From the sequence record NC_041911.1: a DNA stretch of 64,000 nt, one strand, 5' to 3'. The notes under the pieces were generated by a model. The model was not told where the DNA came from, did no database searches, and was given only the letters and a program-made list of their open reading frames with translations. A program made the position numbers and the translations under genes. This document shows positions 5,772-27,997 of the stretch, in pieces; positions within the stretch are counted from its first letter, which is position 1; each line of letters begins with the position of its first letter.

Positions 5772-6620
5772 ATGAAAGCACTCCACTTGGAAGAACCCAC
5801 AGGAATGGCGGCGCTGGAAGCGCTGGATTCCACTGCGGCTCTTGAAGCCTTCTCGCTGCGTGCGGTAGCCAACCGTGCAGCTGACATCATCCCCAACCTC
5901 TCCCATGCCTTCAACGAAGTGCTTTCCTCGTACAAGGGCGACAAGTACGACTTGCGCCCGCTGTCGGTGAACAAAGTCGTGCTGGATAAGGCACTGGACG
6001 GTGCCAACTATCTGGAAGTCGGCAAGCTCAATGTGTTCGTGCCGCAAGGCTTCATCGGCAACTTCAAACAGTACCTGGGTGTGCTCGATCAAGCGCTGAA
6101 CTTCACCAACAGCATCCAAGCCCGGATGGTTGAGTTCAATCAGCTGGTTTCGGCTATGATCACCGACAAGAACACCCGTCAATCGACGAAGGATCTGTCG
6201 ACCGCGACTTCCAGCATGGAGCGTCAGCGCGAGGCAGTACGCGAGCAACTCGATGGCTTCCAACTCGGCGGTAGCCGTTCGGATCGCGCCCTGTTGCAAA
6301 ACACCTTCAGCTCGCTCAACGAGATCAAGGAATGCGTGTTCTTGGCTGCCGACCTGCTGAGCCGCGCTAACCAAGTCACGCTGAACGAAGTCGAAGTGAT
6401 GACCCGTGATGCCGCTGAACTGCTCAAGGCCCTGGGTGAACAAGCGATGGAAGGCAAGGTCGAAGGCATGTCACCGGAAGCCTACAAGAACCTGTCGTCT
6501 GCTACGCTGACCATGGCTCGTGACGTGGAATTGCACGCGCTGCTGATGTACGCCGTGTACCAAGTCAAGAAGTCGGTGGAACACACTTCCGACGCGCTGA
6601 TCCAAGCCCTGCGTTACTGA
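5772..6620 (+). CDS. Probable virion head protein with cleavable propeptide
   Basis: AGGA RBS; ALE motifs at aa 14-16 and 23-25 match the phiKZ-type prohead protease site (S/A/G)xE. Confidence 0.55.
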   Translation: MKALHLEEPTGMAALEALDSTAALEAFSLRAVANRAADIIPNLSHAFNEVLSSYKGDKYDLRPLSVNKVVLDKALDGANYLEVGKLNVFVPQGFIGNFKQYLGVLDQALNFTNSIQARMVEFNQLVSAMITDKNTRQSTKDLSTATSSMERQREAVREQLDGFQLGGSRSDRALLQNTFSSLNEIKECVFLAADLLSRANQVTLNEVEVMTRDAAELLKALGEQAMEGKVEGMSPEAYKNLSSATLTMARDVELHALLMYAVYQVKKSVEHTSDALIQALRY

Positions 6621-6641
6621 TCGATAAAACGACAGCATAAG

Positions 6642-6674
6642 ACCCCGTACTGGCCTTGTGAGCCAGTACGGGGT
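6642..6674. terminator. Bidirectional terminator between convergent genes
   Basis: 13-bp stem ACCCCGTACTGGC/GCCAGTACGGGGT flanked by GCATAA and TTATG. Confidence 0.8.
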
Positions 6675-6701
6675 TTATGACGGTGCAGAAGAGGTATCTC
6701 C

Positions 6702-7106
6702 TTACGCCGCCGCCGGATGGTGGATGGCCAGCAGCGTTTTGAAGTCTTTGAGCATGAAGGCATCGGATGCATAGCGCAACCAAGACGGGATGTTGCGCAC
6801 GAATTCGGCAGCGGCTTCGTCTTCCTTCTGCTCACCACGGATCGCCGTTTTCGCCACTGCTGTGCACTCATCAAGATCGTTCGAGATGAATTTGCCAAGC
6901 TTAGCTGGGAGATCCAGAGCGCTGTTATCCTTGCACAGTGCAAAAGCACCATTCAAACGATCGCATTGCTCCTTGGTGAATTGCTGCGCTCCGCACATCT
7001 TGCCGTACAAGGTACTCCAGAGTACCAGACGTTTGGTGTGGGCGGGCAGCACGGTGGAAATTGCCTTCAGCGATTTGGTTACGCTTTGGACAAAAATGGG
7101 TGCCAT
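6702..7106 (-). CDS. Hypothetical protein
   Basis: 134-aa ORF ending at the convergent terminator. Confidence 0.65.
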   Translation of the reverse strand: MAPIFVQSVTKSLKAISTVLPAHTKRLVLWSTLYGKMCGAQQFTKEQCDRLNGAFALCKDNSALDLPAKLGKFISNDLDECTAVAKTAIRGEQKEDEAAAEFVRNIPSWLRYASDAFMLKDFKTLLAIHHPAAA

Positions 7107-7191
7107 GTTTAGTTCACTCCGTTAGGGGCGGCTCATTAGACCGCCCTCTTCTCGGTTTCAAGAATGGAGATAACACAGGCTCTGGTAGGGA

Positions 7192-8793
7192 TTACTTCGC
7201 CTTCGCTTTAGCGGATGGTTTCGCCGTAACGCGAATACTGGAATTCACCCCAGACCAAATCCCGACATCATCTCCGGCCTCAATCACGACCGCGTACATG
7301 AAAGAACCACCGCCCAAGTTGTTGGTCAGCAACCACATCTTGGGATGTTTGTCTTCCAAACGCCGCAACGCATTACGGTCAGGCAGGTCAATGCCGAGTC
7401 GCAGCGTGATATCACACGATTTAACTTCGCCATTGGATTCTTTCCACTGCGCTTGCGTTTTGTGCTTGGCGTAGCCGACGATGATTTCCGGCTTGAGTGA
7501 ACACACCGTTTTGGTACGCGGCTCCTCACCTTTCTTGACCTTTTCCGCGACTTCCTCGTAATTGAAGAACTCGCTAGTGATCTCGGTGGTTTGCAGCGTG
7601 GCCTGATCCGGCTTCTTGTAGTTATCCAAGAAGTCAGAAAGGATGTCCATGTTATCGAATACACGGTCAACCAAGAACGGTGGCATGCATTCGGTGGTAA
7701 CGAGCACCTTGCCGAATGTCTGGAGGTGGCGTTTGTGATCCACCACGCGATGCAGGAAGTCAGTCCCGTACAGGTCAAGGTAACGACCGGCAGCACCATA
7801 GATGTTGTCGAGGTCGAACTTGAACTTGTAGTCGACTTCACGCGGCAAAGACACCTGCTTGGCAATGACGTTTTCGAGGTAACGCTGTGGTTCAATGCGA
7901 ACCACGGAGAAACCATCGTCAGCCGTGCGTTTGCCGTCCAGATCCGAATCCTTACCTTGTGTGCTCATGTAGTATTCGGTCCGCTCGCCTTCGGCAGCAT
8001 CGATACCGAGATAGCCATAGCGCTGGCACATCATCGGATGACGCAGATCCGAGCGCGACGCCCAATAGTCCGTCGCTTCAGAGATACGGAAGCTGGTATC
8101 CAGTTTGGCTACATCTTTCGGATACTTCGACGTGATGCGTGCTGCTGTGGCCAGATCGTCAGCTGAGTTGTTACCGATGCAGGTGCCGTGGCCTTCCACC
8201 CATTCGAAGTGAACTCGGATACCGCGTTCACGAATAGCCTTACCGATACGATCAGCACGTTCCCACAGTTCCTTGTTCTTGACGGTGGTGCCGTCGCGAC
8301 GAACGAAGTTGTTGTTGAGCCAGTTGGCCAGATAGGTGTTGTGGCCGTCAACCACGTACCGGCTGTCCTGACGGATCACGATGATCGCGGTCTGATCAAA
8401 GTCCGGCTCGGTGATGATACGTTCCAGGCAATGGATGGCGCCCAGCAGTTCAGCGGTGTTGTTGGTGCCGCCGTATTCCAGCGGGATATAGCTATCGTAG
8501 TACCGTTCGATCGGTACGCGATGTTCGAAGTTGGGGGCATTGCCCGTGGTGCCGTCCAACCATTCCAGAAACGCTTCACGCGTCATTTCGTTGACTTCGT
8601 TCTTGAAGTCTTTGCTGGCGAACTCGAACGAATCGCCTTTGGAGATGTACCCGCGGAATGTGGCGGAGTGTGTATTGTGGCCGATGCCCTTAGCCGTCAG
8701 ACCGAGATTCCAGCGATAACCGTGCAAGCCAGCACCGCTGTATTCGTTCTGCGGATGACACCCGCCGTCGGGGTAAAAGACGTAACCGAACAT
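7192..8793 (-). CDS. rnhA: Ribonuclease HI with long C-terminal extension (phiKZ gp155-like)
   Basis: FYPDGGC, TNNTAEL, DSRYV, WVEGH..GNNSADDLA catalytic motifs; start at MFGYVF. Confidence 0.9.
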   Translation of the reverse strand: MFGYVFYPDGGCHPQNEYSGAGLHGYRWNLGLTAKGIGHNTHSATFRGYISKGDSFEFASKDFKNEVNEMTREAFLEWLDGTTGNAPNFEHRVPIERYYDSYIPLEYGGTNNTAELLGAIHCLERIITEPDFDQTAIIVIRQDSRYVVDGHNTYLANWLNNNFVRRDGTTVKNKELWERADRIGKAIRERGIRVHFEWVEGHGTCIGNNSADDLATAARITSKYPKDVAKLDTSFRISEATDYWASRSDLRHPMMCQRYGYLGIDAAEGERTEYYMSTQGKDSDLDGKRTADDGFSVVRIEPQRYLENVIAKQVSLPREVDYKFKFDLDNIYGAAGRYLDLYGTDFLHRVVDHKRHLQTFGKVLVTTECMPPFLVDRVFDNMDILSDFLDNYKKPDQATLQTTEITSEFFNYEEVAEKVKKGEEPRTKTVCSLKPEIIVGYAKHKTQAQWKESNGEVKSCDITLRLGIDLPDRNALRRLEDKHPKMWLLTNNLGGGSFMYAVVIEAGDDVGIWSGVNSSIRVTAKPSAKAKAK

Positions 8794-17416: not shown

Positions 17417-19021
17417 ATGGCTACCGCTTACCAGTATCCGTTCGATCCCAGCGGCACTTCGTCTGCCAACCGGATCTTGAACGAGCAGCATGTCATCACC
17501 GCTGCAAACTTTCGGGATTACCACTACGTAATCCCGAACTTTGCCCCTTTCTTTGAGGGCGACTTCGACATCAAAATGCAGTTTCCTGATGGCTCGATTC
17601 GTCCTCTGACGCAAGGCGTCGACTTCTACTTCTCGAACCAGTTCTTGGACGCTTCGCGTGCCTGTGCGAAGCCTGTCTATGGTTCGATCTCGTTCCTTGA
17701 CACCGATACCGCCGGTATCCTGTCGATCAACTACAACACTGTTGGTGGCGAGTGGAACATCTCGCCGACAGAAATCTCGCGTATCTTGGCCGAAGAGCTG
17801 CGCAACCCCCGTATTACGACCTGGGAACAAATCACGTATTTACCGGAACGTTTCCCGGTAGTCGATCACGCGTGGGATCTGATCGACATGGTGGGTATGT
17901 CTCCGGTTGTGGCTGCCATCGAAGCACTGCGCGACGCGGTTGTGACGAAGAACGGTGGTAACTTCACCGATCACATCAACAACTACTCGAACCCGCACAA
18001 CACCACGGCGGCGCAAGTAGGGTTGGGCAATCTGTTCAACTATCCGATTGCTACGACGGCTGATGCCCAGGCTGGCACGAGTAACTCGTTCTACATGACA
18101 CCCGCGCGTGTCAAGGACGAAATCATGGCATTCGCTACGCCGCTGTCGCACTTGACGGATTACACCAATCCGCACCAAGTGACAAAGACCCAGGTGGGGC
18201 TGAGCAATGTGGCGAACTTCGCAGTTTCGACCACGGCAGAAGCTCAAGCAGGTGCTGTTGATACGTCTTACATGACGCCGCTGAAGACAGCACAAGCCAT
18301 CACGCAGCAGGCCGGTTCAGCGCTCGCAGCTCATGTTGCGAACCAGCAGAACCCGCACAACGTGACGAAAGATCAGGTTGGCTTGTTCAACGTCCAGAAC
18401 TATCCGATCGCTACGCAACAGCAAGCGATGGCTGGTACGGACAACGCCTCGTACATGACGCCGCTGCGCACAGCACAGCTGGTAGCTCAGATCTCTTCAG
18501 TGGCGCTACAGAACCACTTGAATGACTTTACCAACCCTCACCAAGTGACGGCCGGTCAGGTGGGTCTTGGTAATGTGCAGAACTACGGTATCGCTACTCA
18601 GGCTGATGCACAAGCCGGCGTGAGCAATACGCTGTACATGACGCCGGGTCGTGTCGCTGATGCCATCAATGCACTGGCTACGCCGCATGCTCACTTGCTG
18701 GATATGAACAATCCGCACCAAGTGACCGCGGCTCAAGTCGGCGCATACACGACTACTCAGACGGATACGCTGTTGGGTGGTTACGTGCGGCTGACCGATC
18801 AGTGGGTAGCGGGTGAAACCAAAGCTGCCTTCATTGCAGAAGTGCTGCAGGGTACGGCGAACAATGCTTCGATGGTTTACGGTTTCACGGAAGCCCAACT
18901 GGCCGCCGATCTCGAAACCAATTACTTCGATAACGCTTACGCCACCATTGCTGCATTCAATGCATTGGCCCAGCGCGTGACCGACATCGAAACGGCCCTC
19001 AACAGCATCACCGTTGTGTAA
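17417..19021 (+). CDS. Tail fibre / baseplate-attached fibre protein with about 4.5 NPHxVTxxQVGL repeats
   Basis: N-terminal YQYPFDPSG..NRI..E.H domain as in phiKZ-like fibres; tandem ~60-aa repeats NPH.VT..QVGL.NV.NY.IAT...AQAG...YMTP. Confidence 0.8.
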   Translation: MATAYQYPFDPSGTSSANRILNEQHVITAANFRDYHYVIPNFAPFFEGDFDIKMQFPDGSIRPLTQGVDFYFSNQFLDASRACAKPVYGSISFLDTDTAGILSINYNTVGGEWNISPTEISRILAEELRNPRITTWEQITYLPERFPVVDHAWDLIDMVGMSPVVAAIEALRDAVVTKNGGNFTDHINNYSNPHNTTAAQVGLGNLFNYPIATTADAQAGTSNSFYMTPARVKDEIMAFATPLSHLTDYTNPHQVTKTQVGLSNVANFAVSTTAEAQAGAVDTSYMTPLKTAQAITQQAGSALAAHVANQQNPHNVTKDQVGLFNVQNYPIATQQQAMAGTDNASYMTPLRTAQLVAQISSVALQNHLNDFTNPHQVTAGQVGLGNVQNYGIATQADAQAGVSNTLYMTPGRVADAINALATPHAHLLDMNNPHQVTAAQVGAYTTTQTDTLLGGYVRLTDQWVAGETKAAFIAEVLQGTANNASMVYGFTEAQLAADLETNYFDNAYATIAAFNALAQRVTDIETALNSITVV

Positions 19022-19073: not shown

Positions 19074-20351
19074 ATGACTATTCCGATCTATCGCTATCCC
19101 TTGGATGGCACCGGCACCAGCCCGGATAACCTGGTGGTTGGAGAAGAACACCAGCTCTCCAACCGAGCAATTCGTTGCGTAGCGCCGACCTACGGTGGCT
19201 TCTACGCTGAATCCGCAGTGGTGACGGACTTCAACACTGGCGTACCGCTGGTGCGCGGTGTTGACTACTACTTTGGTGAGCTGTTCGAGTTCCCCACTGG
19301 TCGTTACGGTAAGGAAATCTTCGGCCTGATCGTTATCACCAAGCCGAACGTTGCTGCCGTTTCGATCAATTACCAAGCACTGGGTGGTGATTACTCCTAT
19401 TCCATGGACGCAATCATCGCCATGATCGACAACCTGAATCTGGACACGCGTCCGGTGGAATGGGGTGCGATCATTGGTCGTCCGGCGCTGTTCGATCCGG
19501 CAACGCACTGGCACGATGCTGGTGACATCTACGGCTTCGAATACGTAGTGAGCGCGCTGATCGATCTGCGCAACGCCATCCTGACGGGTGACGTGGCCAG
19601 CCACGATGAGATCTATCGCTACATCGATCGCTGGGCAGCTCAGCAGAGCGCGGCCATCCAAGCAGTTTCCGATGCACTGCACACGCACATCGTCGACTAC
19701 ACCAATCCGCACCAAACCACGAAGGCACAGGTAGGGTTGGGACTGGTGTCGAACTTTGCGACAGCGCTGCAAGCTGACATGAATACTGGTACGGCGAACA
19801 ACCTGTTCGTGACGCCAGATATCGTTGCCGCGTACGTGACTCAGCAGGCAGTGAATCCGCTGCTTGCTCACATTGCCGACAAGGGTAACCCGCACCAGAC
19901 TACCGCAGCACAAGTGGGACTGGGTAATGTCCAGAACTATGGTGTTGCTTCCCAGCCGGACATGAATGCCGGTACGCGTGACGACGTCTATCTGACGCCG
20001 CTGAAGGTCGCGACCTATGTGACAAACGTCGCGGTTAACCCGATGAATGCGCACATTGCCAATACCAACAATCCGCATGCCGTGACACAGGCACAAGTTG
20101 GGTTGGGTAGTGTTGCGAACTATCCGGTCGCTACTCAGGCTGAAGCGCAAGCTGGAACGGCTAACAACCGCTACATGACTCCCTGGCTCGTAAACCAAGA
20201 AGTCATGCAGATGCTCAACAACGGTGCATTCGACGGTCGCTATATGCGGTATGGCACCGCCACTGATGGTTCGACCTGGGTTAGCGCTGGTATCGCCTAC
20301 GTGTTCGTATCGGGAGCATGGCGACAGTTCTGGCCGCCTGTGTGGCAGTAA
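19074..20351 (+). CDS. Tail fibre protein, paralogous to the preceding gene, with 3 NPH-QVGL repeats
   Basis: YRYPLDGTG..NLV..EEH N-terminus; three repeats; C-terminal YVFVSGAWRQFWP. Confidence 0.8.
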   Translation: MTIPIYRYPLDGTGTSPDNLVVGEEHQLSNRAIRCVAPTYGGFYAESAVVTDFNTGVPLVRGVDYYFGELFEFPTGRYGKEIFGLIVITKPNVAAVSINYQALGGDYSYSMDAIIAMIDNLNLDTRPVEWGAIIGRPALFDPATHWHDAGDIYGFEYVVSALIDLRNAILTGDVASHDEIYRYIDRWAAQQSAAIQAVSDALHTHIVDYTNPHQTTKAQVGLGLVSNFATALQADMNTGTANNLFVTPDIVAAYVTQQAVNPLLAHIADKGNPHQTTAAQVGLGNVQNYGVASQPDMNAGTRDDVYLTPLKVATYVTNVAVNPMNAHIANTNNPHAVTQAQVGLGSVANYPVATQAEAQAGTANNRYMTPWLVNQEVMQMLNNGAFDGRYMRYGTATDGSTWVSAGIAYVFVSGAWRQFWPPVWQ

Positions 20352-20359
20352 GAGATGTG

Positions 20360-20392
20360 AAAACCACTCCGCCCAAAAGGTGGAGTGGTTTT
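20360..20392 (+). terminator. Terminator after the fibre genes
   Basis: AAAACCACTCCGCC/GGTGGAGTGGTTTT stem followed by TATG. Confidence 0.75.
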
Positions 20393-20426
20393 TATGTCTG
20401 GTGTTATTTGCTAAAAGGAATTTATC

Positions 20427-20804
20427 GTGGCCACCACCTCCTCTACAACCACTGATGTGCAAGGGTATGACATCAATACTCTCCGCAACACAATTAACAG
20501 TGTGCGGGCTCGTATTGCTGCTGGTCAACCCATCAGTGCCAACCAAATCGCTGACCTTGCTTGGGTGTACAACACTTGGATTCAGCATACCCACAACTAC
20601 TACGACTATTACTGGATCGCTTACGGTAATACGTCTCCCTATGGCACCACTGCTGTATGGAAAACTTCTGGCAACGTTGGTGTAGGGTATTTCTCACCAC
20701 CTGGGGCTGGACAAACTGTTCAAGCTGCTCATGTGAATGGCTTAGCGGGTCTGGTCAATGCGATCCGATCCCATACCCACTATTCGCCGGACGGCAGTTA
20801 CTAA
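20427..20804 (+). CDS. Small protein with two GQ-x19-HTH modules (fibre-tip-like)
   Basis: AAAGGA RBS, GTG start; GQ...HTH at aa 33-56 and 95-118. Confidence 0.7.
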   Translation: MATTSSTTTDVQGYDINTLRNTINSVRARIAAGQPISANQIADLAWVYNTWIQHTHNYYDYYWIAYGNTSPYGTTAVWKTSGNVGVGYFSPPGAGQTVQAAHVNGLAGLVNAIRSHTHYSPDGSY

Positions 20805-20887
20805 ACATTCCGTTAGGTAAAAAAGCAAGTGCGTTTTTACCTATCATTCGATTTTTATAGTAATCCATTTCGAGGACGAATCCACCA

Positions 20888-21085
20888 ATGTCCAATTATC
20901 TCTCCACTGTAACAACGGCTGCGGCGCCAGCTAACACTGTGGGGCAAGGCCAAGCGGTACAACCAGCCACGATGAACCAAATGGCTGCTGTACTGGATTC
21001 ATTGCTGAGCCACACGCACGTCTTTTATGACAACTACGGCAGCAACTGCAATTGTAACTGCGCCTGCACCCGAGGATCTCTGTAA
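20888..21085 (+). CDS. 65-aa protein with a GQ-x19-HTH module and NCNCNCAC tail; candidate radical SAM substrate or precursor
   Basis: GAGG RBS; stop overlaps the next start (TAATG); Cys at 54, 56, 58, 60. Confidence 0.75.
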   Translation: MSNYLSTVTTAAAPANTVGQGQAVQPATMNQMAAVLDSLLSHTHVFYDNYGSNCNCNCACTRGSL

Positions 21086-21972
21086 TGAAAACTGTCTTTA
21101 TCAAAAGCGGCGGCTACTACGAAACGCCAGGTGTCGCTGTCTCCGGCGCTATCAACGACGCCTTCGACTTCAACGTGAGTCAGCATTGCCGTTCGAATGC
21201 GCTGTTCATGCTCGACTATGTCAGTCGCGAATACCGCCTCAGCCTTACCGTTGCCTCTGGTGACATGAAAGATGCGTTCGCGCGTCTCGACATGGATCTG
21301 ATCACCAAGGCCGCGGAAGAGCATGGCTTCTCTTATGTCGGCCTGGTGGCTGACGAAAAGGCGATGATGGCTCGCCCGGATGAATTCCTGCGCGACTTGT
21401 CCGTCGTGACCGTCTGCAAGGAAACCGGCAAGTTCCTCGATGCCAAGTCCGGCACCGCTCTGACCGGCAACAACATCACACCGGTGATCTACTGCGTGAA
21501 GATGGCTGACAGCACGTACGCCATGATCCTGAGCCAGATGGCCAACGTGATGCCGAGCATGGTCGACAATCCGAAGGTGGGTCGTGACGACATGAACGTC
21601 ATCGTGGTCAATGACGGCGATGCCATGCGTAGTCAGTTCGTGGACGTCAGCTTCCACGGCGCTACCAAGCATTTCCGCAACAACGACCTCGTTACTGGTT
21701 TCGCAGTGTTTGCTTGGCCGAATGCTCTGATTGAAGTTAATATCTTCAAGGACACGCCGCTCGCCGCTGAGTTCAAGAAGAACTTCGAACTGGAAGTCGA
21801 CAGCAGCTTTGATGCCAAGATCGTCGACGGCAAGGTCGTTATCCAGATGCCGCCTTCGTGTCGCACTGGCTATCTGTCGATCAAGCTGAAGACCACACCG
21901 CTGTACGAAGACGTCTCGTCGCGCGAGATCAAGGAAATGCTTTCGTTCGACTTCATCGTGACGGTTGTTTAA
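21085..21972 (+). CDS. Unknown protein translationally coupled to the Cys-rich peptide
   Basis: 295 aa, strong C-ending codon bias, TAATG overlap. Confidence 0.8.
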   Translation: MKTVFIKSGGYYETPGVAVSGAINDAFDFNVSQHCRSNALFMLDYVSREYRLSLTVASGDMKDAFARLDMDLITKAAEEHGFSYVGLVADEKAMMARPDEFLRDLSVVTVCKETGKFLDAKSGTALTGNNITPVIYCVKMADSTYAMILSQMANVMPSMVDNPKVGRDDMNVIVVNDGDAMRSQFVDVSFHGATKHFRNNDLVTGFAVFAWPNALIEVNIFKDTPLAAEFKKNFELEVDSSFDAKIVDGKVVIQMPPSCRTGYLSIKLKTTPLYEDVSSREIKEMLSFDFIVTVV

Positions 21973-22041: not shown

Positions 22042-23655
22042 ATGCAAGAACAAGTTATCAAAATCCATCGCAAGAAAGAACCCATCGACTTCAAGAAACC
22101 CGGGGAGCGTATCAAAACCATCGCCGAGGTCAAGGACATTCTGTTCGCTGAACTGAAAGTCCTGAACGTGATCCTGACCAACGCCTGCAATCTCTCGTGT
22201 AGCTACTGCTTCGAACAGCACAAACAGGACTACGGCAAGTTCACCCAAGAACAACTGAAGCAAGTGTATGACTTCCTGCTGAACGCCAACACTCAGCCGC
22301 ATCGCCACTTCCAGTTCTTTGGTGGTGAGCCGTTGGCGCAGAAGAAGAAGATCCTCGACTTCTGTCGCGACCACAAGGACGAACTCTCGGCCAACAAGGA
22401 GCAGGTGCGTGTGTCGATCGTGACCAACGCGCTGCTCCTGACACCGGAATTCATCGAGGAATACTGCAGCTACGATTTTACGTCGCTGGTCATTTCTTTG
22501 GACACGGATGATGCCGAGTCGAACCGTCGCGAACTGACGCAAGAGAACATCGACTACATCTTCGAGATGATCAAGCTGTTGCCTGACTCGATGATGCGCG
22601 ATGCTCACCACGTCTCGATTCGTTGCACCATCAACGAAGAGAGCGTACCGCACCTCGATCGCTTCATGGAGCGTCTGTATGCGTCCGGCGTGCGCAATTT
22701 CGTGATCCATCCGCTGATCCTCGCTAAGGATCAAGGCGCCATTGAATGGCAGCCGGGTATGTGGGAGCGGATGTACCATTCACTGCATCAAGCCATGCAT
22801 CGCTGGGACGACTTCAAGATCACCTGGGCCGAAGGCGTGGGTGTGAAAGGCGAGTCCAACTGCATGGTCGGTTCGGACATGATTGCGATGGACGCCTCGG
22901 GTGACTTCAGCGGTTGCTACTTCCTGACCAACCTGAAAGAAACCTACGGCAACACGATGCTCGGCAATCTGTTCCGCGACGAGATCTACATCGATCGTTA
23001 CGTCGAGTTCCAGCAAGCCTATGCCAAGTCGCTGGAACACGAACAGTGCCAGTCGTGCCACCTCAAGAACTTCTGCTACCAGTGCCCGGCTGGTAATGCA
23101 GCTACTGGTGGTTCGCTGTTCCGTCCGGACTCGATGTGCAAGCGCATTGTGGAACTGTTCCTCACTCTGCGTCAGGACTTCAACCGTAAGGCTTTGCTCC
23201 AACAGTTCAAGGAGCTGGAAGAAGCTGTTGTCCAGCAAGGTCCGATTGCTCAGTCTCGTGCAGTGCTGCATTGCATCTACCGCGAGTTCACTGGTGAGAT
23301 TCAGGACAACGCCATCATTGACGCTTATGAAGAACTGCCGGCACCGCACACGCTGCTCTTCATGTTCAAGCAAATGCTGGAAGGCGGTTTGACTAGCATT
23401 CCGCCGCTCGACGTGTGGGTGTCTGGACTACTGCGCCGCAACCCTCGTCCGGAGGAAAGCATCGATCCGTACGAGTTCTACCTGTTCTTGTGCAAGCTAC
23501 GTGGTATCCCGATCGATTTCAAATACACTCCGAATGGTTCTGTTCAAGAGCAGAACTACTTTATCACCCTGACTCACTTGCTGATTTTCGATGAAAGTCG
23601 TTATCTCAGCAAATACGATCCGGAACACAGCCGGTCTCGTATTCTCGACCTGTAA
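22042..23655 (+). CDS. Radical SAM/SPASM enzyme 1 with ~170-aa C-terminal extension
   Basis: CNLSCSYC, FFGGEP, IVTNA; SPASM: NCMVG..GDFSGCYF..LGNL..CQSC.....CYQCP..C. Confidence 0.93.
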   Translation: MQEQVIKIHRKKEPIDFKKPGERIKTIAEVKDILFAELKVLNVILTNACNLSCSYCFEQHKQDYGKFTQEQLKQVYDFLLNANTQPHRHFQFFGGEPLAQKKKILDFCRDHKDELSANKEQVRVSIVTNALLLTPEFIEEYCSYDFTSLVISLDTDDAESNRRELTQENIDYIFEMIKLLPDSMMRDAHHVSIRCTINEESVPHLDRFMERLYASGVRNFVIHPLILAKDQGAIEWQPGMWERMYHSLHQAMHRWDDFKITWAEGVGVKGESNCMVGSDMIAMDASGDFSGCYFLTNLKETYGNTMLGNLFRDEIYIDRYVEFQQAYAKSLEHEQCQSCHLKNFCYQCPAGNAATGGSLFRPDSMCKRIVELFLTLRQDFNRKALLQQFKELEEAVVQQGPIAQSRAVLHCIYREFTGEIQDNAIIDAYEELPAPHTLLFMFKQMLEGGLTSIPPLDVWVSGLLRRNPRPEESIDPYEFYLFLCKLRGIPIDFKYTPNGSVQEQNYFITLTHLLIFDESRYLSKYDPEHSRSRILDL

Positions 23656-23668
23656 GGTAACTTAACCC

Positions 23669-24751
23669 ATGAACTACGATAACATCCAGGACGTCTCGAT
23701 CTATGTGGGTCCTGCGTGCAACTTCAACTGCACGTATTGTGATCGCGCCTACGTAAACAACGTAGGTGTGGATTCTGCTGAATGCGATCCGGCCTTGGTC
23801 GACTTCGTAGTTGATGTGGTGCTGCACTCCGAGCGTCCGATGGTTTCCTTCCACGGTGGGGAACCATTTGTTTACATCAAGACCATGGAGAAGATCATCG
23901 AGGCCGTGCTCGAACGCGTACCAGATTTCAAGGAACGCGGCGCGATCTTCTTCATCCAGACCAATGGCTCGCTGATTACCCGTCAGCGAGCTTTCTTCGA
24001 GAAATACAAAGAGGTGCTCTACGTGAGCATCTCTTACGACTTCAAGTACCAGGGCGATAACCGCACTGCGTACGACATTGACTCAACCCTGCAACTCTTG
24101 AATGATCTGGGGATTGGGACGAACCTGCAATACGTGATTCCGACCTACGACAAGAACGCTTGCGATCACGCAGCGTACTCGGAAGTCATGCGGTTGTTCT
24201 CCAAGTTTAAGCTGGGGCAACTGAACCTGATCCTGTTGCGTCACATTCGGCAGGAAGATAAATTCGAAACAGTGATCGCGGATGAGAGCATCGACCTAAA
24301 GGGATTCTTCCTCGGCTTCATGCGCTTCGTCCAGTTGCTGTACGTCTCAGGTATCAATGTCCACATCGACGGTCATGCCAACAAGATCGATAAGAACTAT
24401 TACAACAACCATAAGCAAATGGTGCTCGCTCCAAATGGCCTGATCGTACCGGAGTACCAGTTCATCGAGTATGATGATTACGATTTCGCTATCGGTCGCT
24501 GGAAGCCTTACGTGGAGATCTCTCGTGATCAGATGCCGGAGAAGGCCGCCAAGAAGATTCGCAAAGAGTGCCAGACTTGTCCGATGGCGGACATCTGTGG
24601 TTTGCGTTATCACTACGCAATGTTCGATATGGACCCGCCAACTCCGCAACGGTGCAAGGAGTTCTACTCTCTGAACCTGATCGCGATCAAGCACCTGTAC
24701 AAACTGAAAGAGCAACCCACCCTTCTCCACCATCTGGGAGTTCAGCAATGA
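23669..24751 (+). CDS. Radical SAM enzyme 2 with partial SPASM domain
   Basis: CNFNCTYC, FHGGEP, IQTNG, ISYD; C-terminal CQTCPMADIC..C. Confidence 0.92.
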   Translation: MNYDNIQDVSIYVGPACNFNCTYCDRAYVNNVGVDSAECDPALVDFVVDVVLHSERPMVSFHGGEPFVYIKTMEKIIEAVLERVPDFKERGAIFFIQTNGSLITRQRAFFEKYKEVLYVSISYDFKYQGDNRTAYDIDSTLQLLNDLGIGTNLQYVIPTYDKNACDHAAYSEVMRLFSKFKLGQLNLILLRHIRQEDKFETVIADESIDLKGFFLGFMRFVQLLYVSGINVHIDGHANKIDKNYYNNHKQMVLAPNGLIVPEYQFIEYDDYDFAIGRWKPYVEISRDQMPEKAAKKIRKECQTCPMADICGLRYHYAMFDMDPPTPQRCKEFYSLNLIAIKHLYKLKEQPTLLHHLGVQQ

Positions 24752-25896
24752 GTCGCGCTATCACGATCGAGAATCCGAAAGAGCACTTCATCCGTTACGA
24801 CGGACTGCTCAACGTCCAGTATGACGTGACGTTTTCGATCTTCAAGAAGTACACCTGTCAAGCCGGGTGCAAGATCTGTTATATCAAGGATGACTTCCTG
24901 CCTAACGAGCAGTTCAAGAAGTATGTCCCGATAGCATCACACGTCAACACGCAGAGCTACGGCGACCGCCTGCTAGAATTCCTGTCATACTTTCAGATGG
25001 CAGCAATCATCGACGACCTGTACTTTGTGCGGGAAGAACATCCGGAGCTGTACAAGTTCTATCAGGAGTATAGCGAGGCCTTCTGGCTGAGTTCCATGAC
25101 GGACAACGCAGTGTTCCGTCACCTGCCGATTATTGAGGATGACCTTCGTGTCGTCGGTCTACGGGAGATCTCGCTCTCCGAGGAATTCTTGTATAAAGTC
25201 AACCAAACGAAGTTCTTTAACGCACTGGATAAAATTCAGAGGCGCGCTAAGATATTGAAAATAAAGGTAATACTGTCGGGTCTCCCTGGCATCGCGATTC
25301 GTGGCAACGATTTGATGCTCTGGTGTCAGAACAATCAAGTGCTCCTAGAGAAGCAATACGAGCACGGTGTTGAGCCGAATGGCCGCAGCTTCCTGTCTCA
25401 GTTGCCGAACACGCGTTACAGCGATCGCAGCCAGGAAACGCACTTCACTGAAGAGATCACCTACAGTGAGAATTCTGGTGAGATGCTGTACCCAATTCAC
25501 TCTGAGTCGATCTTCTTGCAGTACGATGACTTCTACTCGGAGCTGAAGTCTGCCACGCGTGAAGACCGCAGTGCGCCGTTTGCCAAGCTGGATGATTTTG
25601 TCCAGAGTCCGCAAGGCTTCTTGGCTAAGGTGCTGGAAGGTAAGCTGACGGATTACCGCAAGTATGCTTCGTGGATGCAGAACAAAGATCACGACTACTT
25701 CCGTTACTTTGACTATGTGGCGAATAACGTGGTAGTCAATCATGACTTCAACTTCATCCCGCGTATCGCTCTGCGGCCAGATAGCGTGTACTATCACAAG
25801 CTGATGGAACACACGAAGCTGGTGGATACCCAATACGGGCTCGTGGATTCTGCCGCGAGCAAGGTCGTTCCAATTTACTCTTTCAGAGAACAATGA
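24748..25896 (+). CDS. Divergent radical SAM-like protein 3 (no GGEP, no SPASM)
   Basis: CQAGCKIC motif near the N-terminus; ATGA overlaps at both ends; start reassigned to MSRAIT. Confidence 0.7.
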   Translation: MSRAITIENPKEHFIRYDGLLNVQYDVTFSIFKKYTCQAGCKICYIKDDFLPNEQFKKYVPIASHVNTQSYGDRLLEFLSYFQMAAIIDDLYFVREEHPELYKFYQEYSEAFWLSSMTDNAVFRHLPIIEDDLRVVGLREISLSEEFLYKVNQTKFFNALDKIQRRAKILKIKVILSGLPGIAIRGNDLMLWCQNNQVLLEKQYEHGVEPNGRSFLSQLPNTRYSDRSQETHFTEEITYSENSGEMLYPIHSESIFLQYDDFYSELKSATREDRSAPFAKLDDFVQSPQGFLAKVLEGKLTDYRKYASWMQNKDHDYFRYFDYVANNVVVNHDFNFIPRIALRPDSVYYHKLMEHTKLVDTQYGLVDSAASKVVPIYSFREQ

Positions 25897-27152
25897 GCAT
25901 AAGCACATTCCGAATCGAGAAGTCGGGTGAAGTGTTTGGTTACGACAACACACTGAACTCGATCCTCGATGCAAACAACCAGCCTGTGGGTCGAGCTTCG
26001 TCTCTCCTGGCTCAGGCTCCGTCGTTCGAGAAATCGAATACTCCTACCACCATCAAGGTACTGCTCGGGCACGCCTGTAACTACAGCTGCAGCTACTGCG
26101 TACAGAAGGACATCGGTAATCCGGCTGAACGTCCGAAGAACATCATGACCAAGGAGTTGATCAAGAAGATGCGCGCGCATCTCGATCTCTCCAACGTCAC
26201 GCGGATTGAACTGTGGGGCGGCGAGACGCTGCTCTACTGGCCGGATATCGTTGAGATCATCTCAGCACTGGATCGGGAAGGCATTACGTGGTACATCCCG
26301 ACCAACGGTACGATCCTGCGGATGAAGCACGCTGAGTTCTTCCGCCAGATGAAAGGCGAGATGACCATCGGCATCAGTCACGACGGTCCGGGTCACGTAT
26401 CGCTGCGTGGTCCGGAGTTCCTGCATCGCAAGATCGATGAGTTGGGTGCGCTGCAAGACGCCAAGGTACGGTTCAGCTTCAACGCTGTGATCAGTACCAC
26501 GAACTACGATCTGTTTGCCATCGATGACTACTTCCGCTTCTTCCTGCTCAAGGCAGACCTCGATCACGTAGGGCTGGGCTTCGAGCTGGGGCGGACGTAT
26601 GAGACGGGTGCTTGCGCTACCGAGTCGCACGTGATCACACTGGAGCAGATCCCGCACTATCGGTCGATTCTGAAAGCGTATCTCAAGCACCATCTCGATG
26701 CGTTCAAGAAAGGTCAAGCGCCGGAAGACATCGATGCCGATACTCGACTGTTCAACAGCCTGTTCCATTTCAGCAATGGTGTGATTCCGTACGCGAAGTC
26801 GCTAGTTCAGCAAAGCCCCATTCGCTATTACAGCAACTGCGGCACTGATGATCCGAACCTGATCACGCTGGACATGAATGGCGCTATCCGCGTTTGTCAG
26901 AACACGGACGAGAGCTACATCTACGGCAACGTTGCTAATATCGGCGCTGCTAAGATGCAGAAGGTCGATTACAGCAAGAACGACTTCTGCAAGGACTGCT
27001 CGGTTTTGCGGCTGTGCAATCGTAGCTGCCCGATCGAACTGCCATACGAAACCTTTTTGACCAACCACCATATCGAGAACGCTCACTACAGCGAGATACA
27101 ACTCTCGGCGTTTGAGTTGTTGTTCGATAGCCCTATCACCAAAGTGAACTGA
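25893..27152 (+). CDS. Radical SAM/SPASM enzyme 4
   Basis: CNYSCSYC, LWGGET, PTNG, ISHDG; SPASM: NCGT..GAIRVCQ..YGNV..CKDC.....CNRSCP. Confidence 0.93.
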   Translation: MSISTFRIEKSGEVFGYDNTLNSILDANNQPVGRASSLLAQAPSFEKSNTPTTIKVLLGHACNYSCSYCVQKDIGNPAERPKNIMTKELIKKMRAHLDLSNVTRIELWGGETLLYWPDIVEIISALDREGITWYIPTNGTILRMKHAEFFRQMKGEMTIGISHDGPGHVSLRGPEFLHRKIDELGALQDAKVRFSFNAVISTTNYDLFAIDDYFRFFLLKADLDHVGLGFELGRTYETGACATESHVITLEQIPHYRSILKAYLKHHLDAFKKGQAPEDIDADTRLFNSLFHFSNGVIPYAKSLVQQSPIRYYSNCGTDDPNLITLDMNGAIRVCQNTDESYIYGNVANIGAAKMQKVDYSKNDFCKDCSVLRLCNRSCPIELPYETFLTNHHIENAHYSEIQLSAFELLFDSPITKVN

Positions 27153-27160
27153 GAAAACTC

Positions 27161-27997
27161 ATGTCCGACATTCTTGACCGTTTTGTCCTGCCCGAAACTG
27201 CAGCCCAAGTTACCGAGCTGCGCGCCCAGCTGGACGCGATGAAGAACCATCGTGTCTTCGGTATGGTGAAAACCATCGACGACCTGCAAACCTTCATGTC
27301 GCTCCACGTCTACGCCGTGTGGGACTTCATGACGCTGGCCAAGCGCCTGCAGTGCGAGTACACCGGCATCAAGTTCCCGTGGGTGCCGCCGCGCCTCCCC
27401 AAGGTCGCCCGTCTGATCAACGAGATCATCCTGGCCGAAGAGTCCGACGACAACGGTGAGGGCGGTACTTGCAGCCACTTCGAACTGTACGCCATGGCCA
27501 TGCAAGAAATCGGTGACATCGACATGGAGTCGCTCGAAGCATTCGTAACGAACCTTCGTTACGGTATCCCGCCGGTGGAATCTGCTAACCGTGCACTGAT
27601 CAAGGCCGATCCGGAGTTCCGTGCGACTGTCACCAACTACATCGGCGATACTACTGCCGTGGCTCGCACTGGCCTGCCGGAAGAAGTGCTGGCCTACTTC
27701 GTCTTTGGTCGTGAAGATTCGATCCCGGCGATGTTCAGCAACCTGCTTGAGCAGATGGGTGATCTGGCTGCCAAAGCGACGACCTTCACGTACTACTTGA
27801 AGCGCCATATCCAACTCGACGGTGAAGACCACAGTGTCAAAGCTGCTGAGATGCTGTCGCTCGAACTGGAAGGCAATCCGATTCGCACGCGCACCGCACT
27901 GATCGCTGGTATCAATGCCGCCAAGTCCCGCATTGCTTTGTGGGATGCGATTGCTGCGAAGCTGGAAGCAACTCAAGCAGCGACGGCAACTGCCTAA
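27161..27997 (+). CDS. DUF3050 / heme-oxygenase-like diiron (HDO superfamily) protein
   Basis: FMSLHVYAVWDFM.L.K.LQ, RLINEIILAEESD, SHFELY..AM, FGREDSIP.MF, YYLKRHIQLDGEDH: DUF3050 signature with E/H diiron ligands. Confidence 0.85.
   Translation: MSDILDRFVLPETAAQVTELRAQLDAMKNHRVFGMVKTIDDLQTFMSLHVYAVWDFMTLAKRLQCEYTGIKFPWVPPRLPKVARLINEIILAEESDDNGEGGTCSHFELYAMAMQEIGDIDMESLEAFVTNLRYGIPPVESANRALIKADPEFRATVTNYIGDTTAVARTGLPEEVLAYFVFGREDSIPAMFSNLLEQMGDLAAKATTFTYYLKRHIQLDGEDHSVKAAEMLSLELEGNPIRTRTALIAGINAAKSRIALWDAIAAKLEATQAATATA

Follow-up and report, generated by a model that had tools for sequence, protein, structure and literature searches.

A conserved cysteine-ladder peptide travels with radical-SAM enzymes beside the tail-fibre genes of large phages

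Radical-SAM enzymes with a SPASM domain mature short Cys-rich peptides encoded in their vicinity, as found in the ranthipeptide and sactipeptide systems PapB-PapA, NxxcB-NxxcA and CteB-SCIFF. In these systems, cysteines are linked by thioether bonds to carbon atoms of acceptor residues, with NxxcB using the Asn C-beta (PMC11851443) and PapB using Asp and Glu at positions from i+1 to i+7 (PMC12373016). Whereas this chemistry is known from bacterial natural-product clusters, it has a precedent in one enzyme subunit, the gamma subunit of quinohaemoprotein amine dehydrogenase (QhpC), where QhpD staples a small Cys-rich polypeptide by Cys-to-Asp/Glu thioethers and where the polypeptide then serves as a permanent part of a protein complex instead of a secreted product. 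On the side of the phages, the trimeric fibres and spikes of the T4 gp37 needle and of the P2 gpV and phi92 gp138 apex contain HxH metal sites, T-even phages encode the small tail-fibre-tip adhesin gp38 just after the distal fibre gene, and the lambda tail-tip protein gpL contains an Fe-S cluster. Full-text literature searches for a link between radical-SAM peptide maturation and phage structural modules revealed no paper describing it, and a search for the motif string also found nothing. In light of these systems, we became interested in an unannotated gene in a 64,000-nucleotide stretch of the jumbo Ralstonia phage RP12 (NC_041911.1, hereafter the window).

The gene encodes a peptide of 65 residues, whose last 16 residues are YGSNCNCNCACTRGSL followed by a stop codon. 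The observation of an earlier note, that Cys54, Cys56, Cys58 and Cys60 alternate with Asn53, Asn55 and Asn57 at the C-terminus, is confirmed by our translation, with Ala59 occupying the last of the interleaved positions, although the start given for this stretch (21034) is one base early since Tyr50 begins at 21035. The DNA pattern encoding C-N-C-N-C occurs once in the window on either strand, compared to 0.01 occurrences expected from shuffled sequences, and the motif is more than chance. The features of the locus are summarized in the table.

Features of the RP12 locus, with positions referring to the window
Position	Strand	Feature	Description
17417..19021	+	ORF072	Tail-fibre-like protein with repeated NPH...QVGLGN-type units; annotated 'virion structural protein' in NC_041911.1; PHROG hits to phrog_2163 and several tail-fibre and tail-collar-fibre families
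19074..20351	+	ORF073	Second tail-fibre-like protein, immediately upstream of the cassette
20354..20398	+	Terminator-like hairpin	Strong (20 pairs, T-rich tail), between ORF073 and ORF074; from a consensus scan only, function inferred
20427..20804	+	ORF074 (125 aa)	Paralogue of the peptide with two helix+HxHxxxD modules (H54/H56/D60 and H116/H118/D122) around a variable middle
20888..21085	+	Cys-ladder peptide (65 aa)	Unannotated in the RP12 and RP31 records; variable N-terminal part; helix to about 21010; HxHxxxD at 21011-21031; nine-residue spacer; Cys ladder C54-C60 at 21047-21067; T-R-G-S-L at 21068-21082; stop at 21083-21085; GAGGA 11 nt before the ATG; stop TAA overlaps the ATG of ORF075 (TAATG)
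21027..21263	+	Overlapping ORF in another frame	Disregarded, because conservation follows the 20888 frame
21034..21672	-	Overlapping ORF	Disregarded for the same reason
21085..21972	+	ORF075 (295 aa)	Conserved protein, predicted to be beta-rich, whose start is coupled to the stop of the peptide
22042..23655	+	ORF076 (537 aa)	Radical-SAM enzyme (Pfam Radical_SAM 1e-19) with a full seven-Cys SPASM-type C-terminal half and a roughly 160-aa C-terminal extension; C49/53/56 and C274/292/336/339/345/348/366 invariant in 16 sequences
23669..24751	+	ORF077 (360 aa)	Radical-SAM enzyme with four conserved C-terminal Cys (one auxiliary cluster likely)
24748..25896	+	ORF078 (382 aa)	Divergent radical-SAM-like protein; invariant CX3CX2C (C37/41/44), no auxiliary Cys, no recognisable GGE motif
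25893..27152	+	ORF079 (419 aa)	Radical-SAM enzyme with six conserved SPASM-like Cys
27161..27997	+	ORF080 (278 aa)	Haem-oxygenase-like DUF3050 / HamA_HO-like protein (Pfam PF11251, 2.2e-68); accessory, present in the RP12-like loci and in loci L014, L018, L022 and L024, absent in the others

To investigate whether the peptide is a genuine gene product, we have collected its homologues. In an alignment of 16 sequences, C54, C60, H42, T43, H44, D48, R62 and G63 are invariant, whereas C56, C58, Y47 and Y50 are kept in at least 90%. The Cys and Asn codons are mixed (TGC 40 / TGT 28, AAC 27 / AAT 18), which excludes a DNA repeat, and two homologues differ at 13 synonymous and no non-synonymous codons among the last 24. 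In a library of 1.8 billion proteins, the family comprises 68 clusters at 50% identity and is widespread in uncultured large phages. Among 72 family members, the ladder contains 3, 4, 5 or 6 Cys in 14, 18, 29 and 11 cases, respectively, the residues between the cysteines are N, Q, D or E in 222 of 253 positions (88%), the spacing between HxH and the first Cys is nine residues in 71 members, and the last Cys is followed by xRG in 56. The possibility that the sequence is a chance ORF in the 280-nt gap between ORF074 and ORF075, as implied by its lacking annotation in AP017924, AP017925 and NC_041911 and by the absence of any Pfam, NCBIfam or PHROG hit, is refuted by these homologues, which occur at the same position in more than 20 loci and combine invariant residues with mostly synonymous change, and by a ribosome-binding site and the stop-start overlap with the next gene. 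In 11 of 15 homologues, the stop codon of the peptide overlaps or directly abuts the ATG of the following gene.

The peptide is part of a conserved cassette, where it is syntenic with radical-SAM enzymes in every locus read, over protein identities from about 27% to 83% and over several phage backbones. The four enzyme families share an invariant CX3CX2C motif. Of the four radical-SAM enzymes counted in the earlier note, three (ORF076, ORF077 and ORF079) are Pfam Radical_SAM hits, and the count is thus nearly right. The fourth, ORF078, has no Pfam, NCBIfam or PDB hit, but its motif is invariant in 15 sequences and a profile-profile alignment with hhalign matches it to the ORF077 family in register at the cluster motif (probability 47%, E 2e-4). 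For ORF076, the best curated family is PapB with 125 bits, far below the cut-off of 340, QhpD (TIGR03906; 73.8 against 453 bits) and SCIFF (69.9 against 425 bits) are likewise far below their cut-offs, as are all curated maturase families, and the best match in the PDB is CteB (5wgg, 2.5e-18). Despite its seven invariant Cys, the Pfam SPASM hit of this protein is below threshold (16.6 against 21.5 bits). No RRE or PqqD-type leader-binding domain was detected in any cassette protein, and alignments to RRE-bearing maturases start after their RRE, with profile position about 85-95 aligned to residue 27-40 of ORF076. Similarly, no peptidase, exporter or immunity gene is recognisable among the conserved genes, and a search with PADLOC returned only weak viperin-like radical-SAM hits, so that this is not a known defence system. 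ORF075 follows the peptide in most loci read and precedes it in L018, while none was found in L009, L026 or L027. Its AlphaFold2 model (pLDDT 86, pTM 0.84) is beta-rich and unlike a peptidase or the winged helix of an RRE. In Foldseek searches, it showed only generic beta-sandwich matches with a TM of at most 0.24 in the PDB and at most 0.33 in BFVD apart from itself, and it has no family or PDB sequence hit.

The upstream ORF074, which together with the shared HxHxxxD module and the tail-fibre context had escaped the earlier note, was identified as a paralogue, since a jackhmmer search seeded with ORF074 recovers the Cys peptides at E-values of 1e-10 to 1e-16. As a word-based search with ORF074 found only two proteins, its family was collected from the loci instead. 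In these orthologues, the stretch between the two modules ranges from 62 to 323 aa. In locus L014 it is a Pfam Gly_rich_2 domain (49.7 bits, cut-off 24.3), and locus L002 contains tandem paralogues with different inserts. ORF074-type protein and peptide together supply three helix+HxH modules in 19 of the 20 loci read, in a distribution of 2+1, 1+2 or three in a single chain, while the remaining locus has an extra two-module paralogue. The prediction of a natural single-chain protein with three modules (P0044) was of low confidence (pLDDT 55, pTM 0.38) and only a helix followed by a strand at HxH can be read for each module. Searches of the PDB with the sequences and profiles of the peptide, ORF074, ORF075 and ORF078 families gave no credible hit.

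In about twenty loci on several different phage backbones, and in one Ewingella prophage that also contains sheath-initiator and Baseplate_J genes, the cassette lies beside tail-fibre or baseplate genes. The relative FLC1-1B has the same backbone but lacks the entire cassette, and the fibre corresponding to ORF073 is longer, with its C-terminal third matching long-tail-fibre distal-subunit families. In one homologue (P0061), the ladder is located mid-protein and followed by a proline linker and a 180-aa domain. Finally, a probable intein sits inside the ladder of one homologue and a Hint domain in an ORF074-type protein.

Together, these results partly support the interpretation of the earlier note, which had proposed thioethers stapling a trimer, Cys oxidation or epimerisation, or alternatively the ligation of a metal or Fe-S cluster as in gpL. 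The peptide is very probably the substrate of the adjacent enzymes, as inferred from synteny, from the enzyme class and from interleaved residues that correspond to the acceptors of known Cys-to-side-chain thioether enzymes. Conversely, a pairing of four Cys with four enzymes is not supported, since the number of cysteines varies and the enzyme set varies independently, with either all four, ORF076 and ORF077 only, or ORF079 only. Neither is Asn supported as the defining partner, as it is replaceable by Q, D, E or A, nor a homotrimer, since the distribution of HxH modules points to a hetero-assembly with pseudo-threefold symmetry. A likeness to gpL is not supported either, nor is the proposed near-miss to the anaerobic sulfatase-maturase (anSME) motif. 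Although C-x-C-x-R is conserved, the one locus that has only the ORF079-type enzyme has a core without the R-G end, while loci without ORF079 keep it.

In our preferred, though still tentative, reading, the peptide is the dedicated substrate of the radical-SAM cassette and probably stays a protein subunit. Each family member has a variable N-terminus and an amphipathic helix running into the HxHxxxD motif, followed by the ladder, which is usually closed by x-R-G-x-L. In the proposed mechanism, the three modules would pack around a pseudo-threefold axis with the three HxH pairs forming a metal site like those of homotrimeric phage fibres. ORF076 together with ORF077 would then link ladder cysteines by thioether bonds to side-chain or backbone carbons of the interleaved residues, giving a rigid, protease-resistant stalk, and ORF078, ORF079 and ORF080 would add lineage-specific modifications. 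The finished complex would sit at the distal end of the ORF072/ORF073 fibre, with the variable insert of ORF074 as the host-contacting surface. A structural instead of a secreted role is suggested by the neighbourhood of the cassette, its absence from FLC1-1B, the hypervariable ORF074 insert, the module count including a natural single-chain version, the mid-protein ladder, the intein and Hint insertions, and the lack of recognisable peptidase, exporter and immunity genes. While the reality of the gene, the conservation of the family, the paralogy, the cassette synteny, the enzyme motifs and the proximity to tail-fibre genes are established by our analysis, the substrate relation, the type of bond, the metal site and the location in the virion are inferred, in absence of chemical evidence for any modification. 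The published virion proteome of RP31, comprising 32 proteins from excised gel bands, lists none of the RP31 counterparts of ORF072-ORF080 (PMC5468394, Table S3). This is weak evidence against our reading, because the peptide was not in the search database and small or cross-linked peptides are easily missed, but even the fibre proteins were not listed. Moreover, tail-fibre regions are common landing sites for accessory genes and synteny alone does not prove a structural role, and a terminator-like hairpin separates ORF073 from the cassette. Also against our reading stand the lack of a detected RRE or PqqD-type leader-binding domain, the scores of all curated maturase families far below their cut-offs, and the low confidence of the single-chain three-module model.

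Among the alternatives, a conventional diffusible RiPP appears unlikely but remains the strongest. In this view, the N-terminal two thirds would be a leader with helix+HxH as recognition sequence, the cross-linked core would be cut off and released at lysis as bacteriocin, signal or anti-competitor molecule, and ORF074 would be a second precursor. The layout is that of a radical-SAM RiPP cluster, with a short precursor directly upstream of several maturases, the conserved helix lies in the position of a leader, the nearest enzyme families are all RiPP maturases, and the virion proteome did not list any cassette product. However, besides the missing protease, transporter and immunity genes, the core is more conserved than the N-terminus of the presumed leader, the ladder can lie in the middle of a 256-aa protein, the module count is nearly constant, ORF074 has the architecture of a receptor-binding protein, the cassette is constantly adjacent to fibre genes on unrelated backbones, and intein or Hint insertions are present.

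Somewhat less likely still is a tail that simply ligates Fe, Zn, Cu or an Fe-S cluster in a fibre-tip assembly without covalent Cys chemistry, the enzymes modifying aromatic residues near the HxH motifs, ORF074 or the fibre. HxH pairs and C-x-C ladders are classic metal ligands, the HxHxxxD module occurs without a ladder in ORF074, and some three-module proteins (P0080 and the possibly incomplete P0088) lack the ladder, so that the enzymes might target the conserved D, aromatic and [ST] residues after each HxH. Yet, the variable number of 3-6 Cys fits a fixed cluster site poorly, the selection for N/Q/D/E between cysteines is hard to explain by thiolate ligation alone, and the SPASM enzymes nearest to PapB and CteB act on Cys-containing peptides. 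Equally unlikely is a different radical-SAM chemistry, such as conversion of Cys to formylglycine at the C-x-C-x-R end, epimerisation of ladder residues or three-residue cyclophanes at the conserved aromatic-x-[S/T] just before the ladder. The C-x-C-x-R-G end is kept in most members, the second-best family of ORF079 is anaerobic sulfatase maturase (TIGR03942; 49.4 against 349 bits) and that of ORF077 the cyclophane enzyme YhhB, and up to four different enzymes imply more than one reaction type. However, these family scores are all 40-60 bits against cut-offs of 350-450, the sulfatase motif C/S-x-P/A-x-R requires Pro or Ala at its third position where this family has Cys, and the co-occurrence described above argues against a link between ORF079 and the R-G end.

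If the product is a stapled fibre-tip subunit, it would add a new chemical principle to phage host recognition and particle stability. In its furthest form, which we consider possible but less likely than not, large tailed phages would use RiPP-type radical-SAM chemistry to build part of the virion, with a two-chain or single-chain pseudo-trimer containing a central His6 metal site and a thioether-stapled ladder as the distal, host-recognising tip of a fibre. This would be the first radical-SAM-cross-linked structural protein of a virus and a new class of receptor-binding module. If the product is instead a released peptide, it would be a new phage-encoded RiPP class with an unprecedented one-residue-spaced Cys ladder. 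In either case, the family was missed by annotation because its key gene is only 65 codons long, and RP12/RP31 and the Ewingella americana E4 prophage are cultured sources in which the product can be described directly.

Compared to the ranthipeptide and sactipeptide systems, the locus shares a short Cys-rich peptide, encoded about 1 kb upstream of ORF076 in RP12 and at the same place in the homologous loci, next to a CX3CX2C enzyme with a seven-Cys SPASM-type domain, and cysteines interleaved with the acceptor residues used by those enzymes. It differs in the low scores, the absence of a detectable RRE, protease or exporter, the presence of up to four paralogous enzymes, the one-residue spacing of the ladder, and in being phage-borne, embedded in tail-fibre modules and paired with a hypervariable paralogue, with a product that probably keeps its leader. 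To QhpC and QhpD the homology is only generic, there is no quinone cofactor context and no dehydrogenase partner, and the setting is viral. With lambda gpL, the peptide shares cysteines in a protein associated with the tail tip, which in the case of the peptide is inferred, but no search of Pfam, NCBIfam, PHROGs or the PDB returned gpL or any tail-tip or Fe-S protein, the Cys count is variable, which fits a fixed four-Cys cluster site poorly, and only two Cys are invariant. As in T-even gp38, a small separate protein with conserved ends, a hypervariable middle and, in some members, glycine-rich inserts is encoded after the fibre gene, although there is no GP38 family hit, the only support is the Gly_rich_2 domain in one orthologue, and gp38 has neither a Cys-ladder partner nor radical-SAM maturation. 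Finally, as in the HxH sites of trimeric fibres and spikes, an HxH motif would be placed at the end of an axial element in a tail-fibre-associated protein and three pairs per assembly would provide six His ligands, but no sequence or fold relative was returned in our searches, an invariant Asp follows at +3, and the three pairs come from two different chains or from one chain instead of a homotrimer.

Within Ralstonia phage RP12, a 279,845-bp phiKZ-related jumbo phage to which the window is identical and whose record positions correspond to the window positions used here plus 62,000, translation of the open reading frame located in the 280-nt gap between the annotated ORF074 and ORF075 yields a 65-residue peptide ending in YGSNCNCNCACTRGSL, which is followed by a stop codon. 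The ladder of alternating cysteine and asparagine residues described in the earlier note is thus confirmed, with correct residue numbers, although the start assigned to it is one base early. The reading frame is not annotated in any of the three database records. A GAGGA is found 11 nt ahead of its ATG and its TAA shares a base with the ATG of ORF075. The DNA pattern encoding C-N-C-N-C occurs once in the window, compared to an expected number of 0.01. A search with ARAGORN did not identify any tRNA or tmRNA genes in the window. The positions of the features described in the following are compiled in the table.

Positions of the features of the cassette in RP12 and of related features at other loci (loci carrying the cassette are designated with L)
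Sequence	Position	Strand	Feature
RP12 window	19074-20351		ORF073, second tail-fibre-like gene; own HxH-containing motif at about residue 150
RP12 window	20354-20398		Terminator-like hairpin between ORF073 and ORF074
RP12 window	20427-20804		ORF074 (125 aa)
RP12 window	about 20812-20845		Weaker AT-rich hairpin between ORF074 and the peptide gene
RP12 window	20888-21085	+	65-residue peptide
RP12 window	24748-25896		ORF078
L002	8563-9255 and 9268-9936		Two ORF074-type genes in tandem
L009	7950-8570		Peptide homologue with insert
L009	8136-8525		Insert within the ladder (130 aa)
L010 (identical L011)	6620-7975		ORF074-type protein (452 aa)
L014	6807-7964		ORF074-type protein with glycine-rich insert
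L025 (Ewingella americana E4, NZ_RCZD01000008.1)	213114-233182		Cassette on bacterial scaffold
L026	4239-5009		Ladder protein P0061

To investigate whether the peptide belongs to a family, we searched several sequence collections. A word-based search of 5.8 billion proteins identified four homologues of 65-70 residues, a scan of IMG/VR 15 loci, a scan of 185,579 species genomes two loci and a profile search of 1.84 billion representatives 68 clusters at 50% identity, 32 of which with E-values below 1e-10. In an alignment of 16 sequences, M32, L36, L39, H42, T43, H44, D48, C54, C60, R62 and G63 are invariant, whereas Y47, D49, Y50, C56 and C58 are retained in at least 90%. The codons for Cys and Asn are mixed and two homologues differ by 13 synonymous and 0 non-synonymous codons in the last 24, indicating that selection acts on the protein. 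Among 72 distinct members, the alternating run contains 3, 4, 5 or 6 cysteines in 14, 18, 29 and 11 cases, respectively, and the residue between cysteines is N in 142, Q in 56, A in 20, D in 18, E in 6 and another residue in 11 positions. The distance between the HxH motif and the first cysteine of the ladder is nine residues in 71 of 72 members and x-R-G follows the last cysteine in 56 of 72. Hence, the cysteines, their spacing and the amide or carboxylate character of the interleaved residues are conserved, whereas neither asparagine as such nor the number of four cysteines is. The interpretation offered in the earlier note, which had set four cysteines against four radical-SAM enzymes and emphasized asparagine as partner, is therefore only partly supported.

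A relationship was also found to the upstream ORF074, which contains two copies of the unit preceding the ladder in the peptide, consisting of an amphipathic helix that runs into an HxHxxxD motif. A jackhmmer search seeded with ORF074 collects the Cys peptides with E-values of 1e-10 to 1e-16. We have counted these modules in every locus where the genomic context was accessible. In 17 loci, an ORF074-type protein with two modules is accompanied by a peptide with one. In the Ewingella locus, an 85-residue protein contains a single module whereas a second one is fused in front of the ladder peptide, resulting in a 122-residue ladder protein with two modules. In L027, three modules and the ladder are combined in a single chain of 230 residues (P0044) and a separate ORF074-type gene is absent, while L002 contains a second two-module paralogue in tandem. 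The stretch between both modules of ORF074-type proteins is hypervariable, ranging from 62 to 323 residues. In the tandem paralogues of L002, the ends are conserved but the middle regions of roughly 150 residues are unrelated, as expected for alternative receptor-binding proteins. In L014, the insert is a Pfam Gly_rich_2 domain that scores above threshold (49.7 bits), with a weak match also found in the family member P0088, which is reminiscent of the glycine-rich fibre-tip adhesins of T-even phages. In L010 and the identical L011, the two modules are followed by a C-terminal extension with a Hint-type domain (Pfam Hom_end_hint, E 9e-7, just below threshold), which might be either an intein or an autoprocessing domain. 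A low-confidence AlphaFold2 model of the single-chain member P0044 shows each module as a helix followed by a strand at the HxH, but does not provide reliable information on their packing.

Downstream of the peptide follow six genes. The first of these, ORF075, is conserved at this position in most of the loci read and coupled to the peptide by a stop-start overlap in most of them. It is confidently predicted as a beta-rich multi-domain protein (pLDDT 86, pTM 0.84), for which no informative structural relative was identified and which shows no resemblance to a peptidase or a leader-binding domain. ORF076 is a radical-SAM enzyme with seven invariant SPASM cysteines, whose best curated family is PapB (125 bits, at a cut-off of 340) and whose best solved structure is CteB (E 2.5e-18). 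ORF077 contains a CX3CX2C motif and four conserved cysteines and ORF079 the same motif and six conserved cysteines. ORF078 matches no family or structure, but it retains an invariant CX3CX2C motif and aligns in register with the ORF077 family (hhalign probability 47%, E 2e-4). Since it lacks the GGE motif and any auxiliary cysteine, it may be a radical-SAM-derived protein with altered or lost SAM chemistry. Finally, ORF080 is a DUF3050/HamA haem-oxygenase-like protein that is present in only some cassettes. The enzyme complement is variable. Whereas most loci encode all four enzyme types, L009 (as a fusion) and L027 contain only the ORF077 and ORF076 types and L026 only the ORF079 type, within the 13 kb of this locus that were analyzed. 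In the ladder protein of L026 (P0061), the R-G end is replaced by a poly-proline linker and a 180-residue Cys/Trp-rich C-terminal domain, and fibre-like genes are found on both sides. In the Ewingella locus, the ORF076-type enzyme carries an N-terminal extension (696 residues). The peptide homologue of L009 contains an insert within its Cys ladder, which starts with Cys, includes a T-x-x-H block and ends in Asn followed by Cys. The piece preceding this insert ends in a partial ladder, whereas the piece following it begins with the rest of a ladder and the R-G end. Although Pfam Intein_splicing matches only weakly (E 0.021), this is a probable mini-intein in a gene of about 75 codons.

In RP12, the cassette follows two tail-fibre-like genes. 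The second, ORF073, and its orthologues in L002, L005, L007 and L014 carry a conserved H-x-H-D-x-G-D motif of their own, which is not preceded by the helix found in the cassette and may constitute a separate metal site in the fibre shaft. The hairpin between this gene and ORF074 has a 20-bp stem and a T-rich tail, and the hairpin between ORF074 and the peptide gene is weaker (z -2.5). The related jumbo phage FLC1-1B shares the same backbone on both sides but lacks the cassette. Its second fibre protein is longer, matches long-tail-fibre distal-subunit families in its C-terminal third and is followed by a 187-residue protein. In more distant viral contigs of 27-257 kb, the gene next to the ORF074-type gene again matches tail-fibre families, a T7 tail-fibre N-terminus, a tail-collar fibre or a fibre with an S74 chaperone. 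In Ewingella americana E4, a cultured enterobacterium, the cassette is located on a 253-kb scaffold behind sheath-initiator and Baseplate_J genes and thus in a contractile-tail prophage or tailocin. Among 50,697 deposited phage genomes, only RP12 and RP31 carry the cassette.

While the existence of the gene and its family, the relationship to ORF074, the composition of the cassette and its location are established by our sequence comparisons, the following considerations on chemistry, metal coordination and placement in the virion are inferred. The formation of thioether bonds between cysteine and carbon as at least one of the reactions appears somewhat more likely than not. It is suggested by the presence of a SPASM enzyme that is closest to PapB and CteB, by a ladder whose non-Cys positions are the acceptor residues of NxxcB (Asn C-beta) and PapB (Asp/Glu, accepted from i+1 to i+7) and by the rigidly fixed distance from a conserved, presumed docking element. 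In RP12, the ladder contains three overlapping N-x-x-C units (N53-C56, N55-C58 and N57-C60), which on sequence alone fits an NxxcB-like register that would leave C54 free, without defining the register.

In principle, the product could either be released as a RiPP or remain a permanent subunit at the tip of the fibre, and we consider the latter more likely. This view is based on the absence of a recognisable protease or exporter in the conserved cassette, the adhesin-like variability of ORF074, the count of three modules that is altered only by the additional paralogue in L002, the location of the ladder in the middle of a larger protein in one homologue, the presence of probable intein or Hint insertions, the persistent neighbourhood of fibre genes (in Ewingella of sheath-initiator and Baseplate_J genes) and the cassette-for-distal-fibre replacement observed in the comparison of RP12 with FLC1-1B. 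By analogy with the HxH sites of homotrimeric fibres, three HxH pairs would form one octahedral metal site, which would here be built from two chains. The virion proteome of RP31 did not list any product of the cassette, nor the two fibre proteins, but it covered only 32 proteins from excised bands and could not have matched the unannotated peptide. As for the likeness to the tail-tip protein gpL of lambda raised in the earlier note, no relationship to this protein, to gp38 or to any solved fibre was returned in our searches, and PADLOC revealed only a generic viperin-like radical-SAM similarity. Our literature searches did not find any description of this system.

In its proposed mechanism, the system would work like the maturation of ranthipeptides and sactipeptides and, in concept, like QhpC/QhpD. 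Nevertheless, it does not fulfil the criteria of any curated family and it lacks a recognisable RRE, protease and exporter. It is possible, although less likely than not, that it represents a categorically new use of radical-SAM chemistry, for a part of the virion. Compared to these known systems, whose general principle it would share, we regard the precursor and the enzyme family as new and as being placed in a new biological setting.
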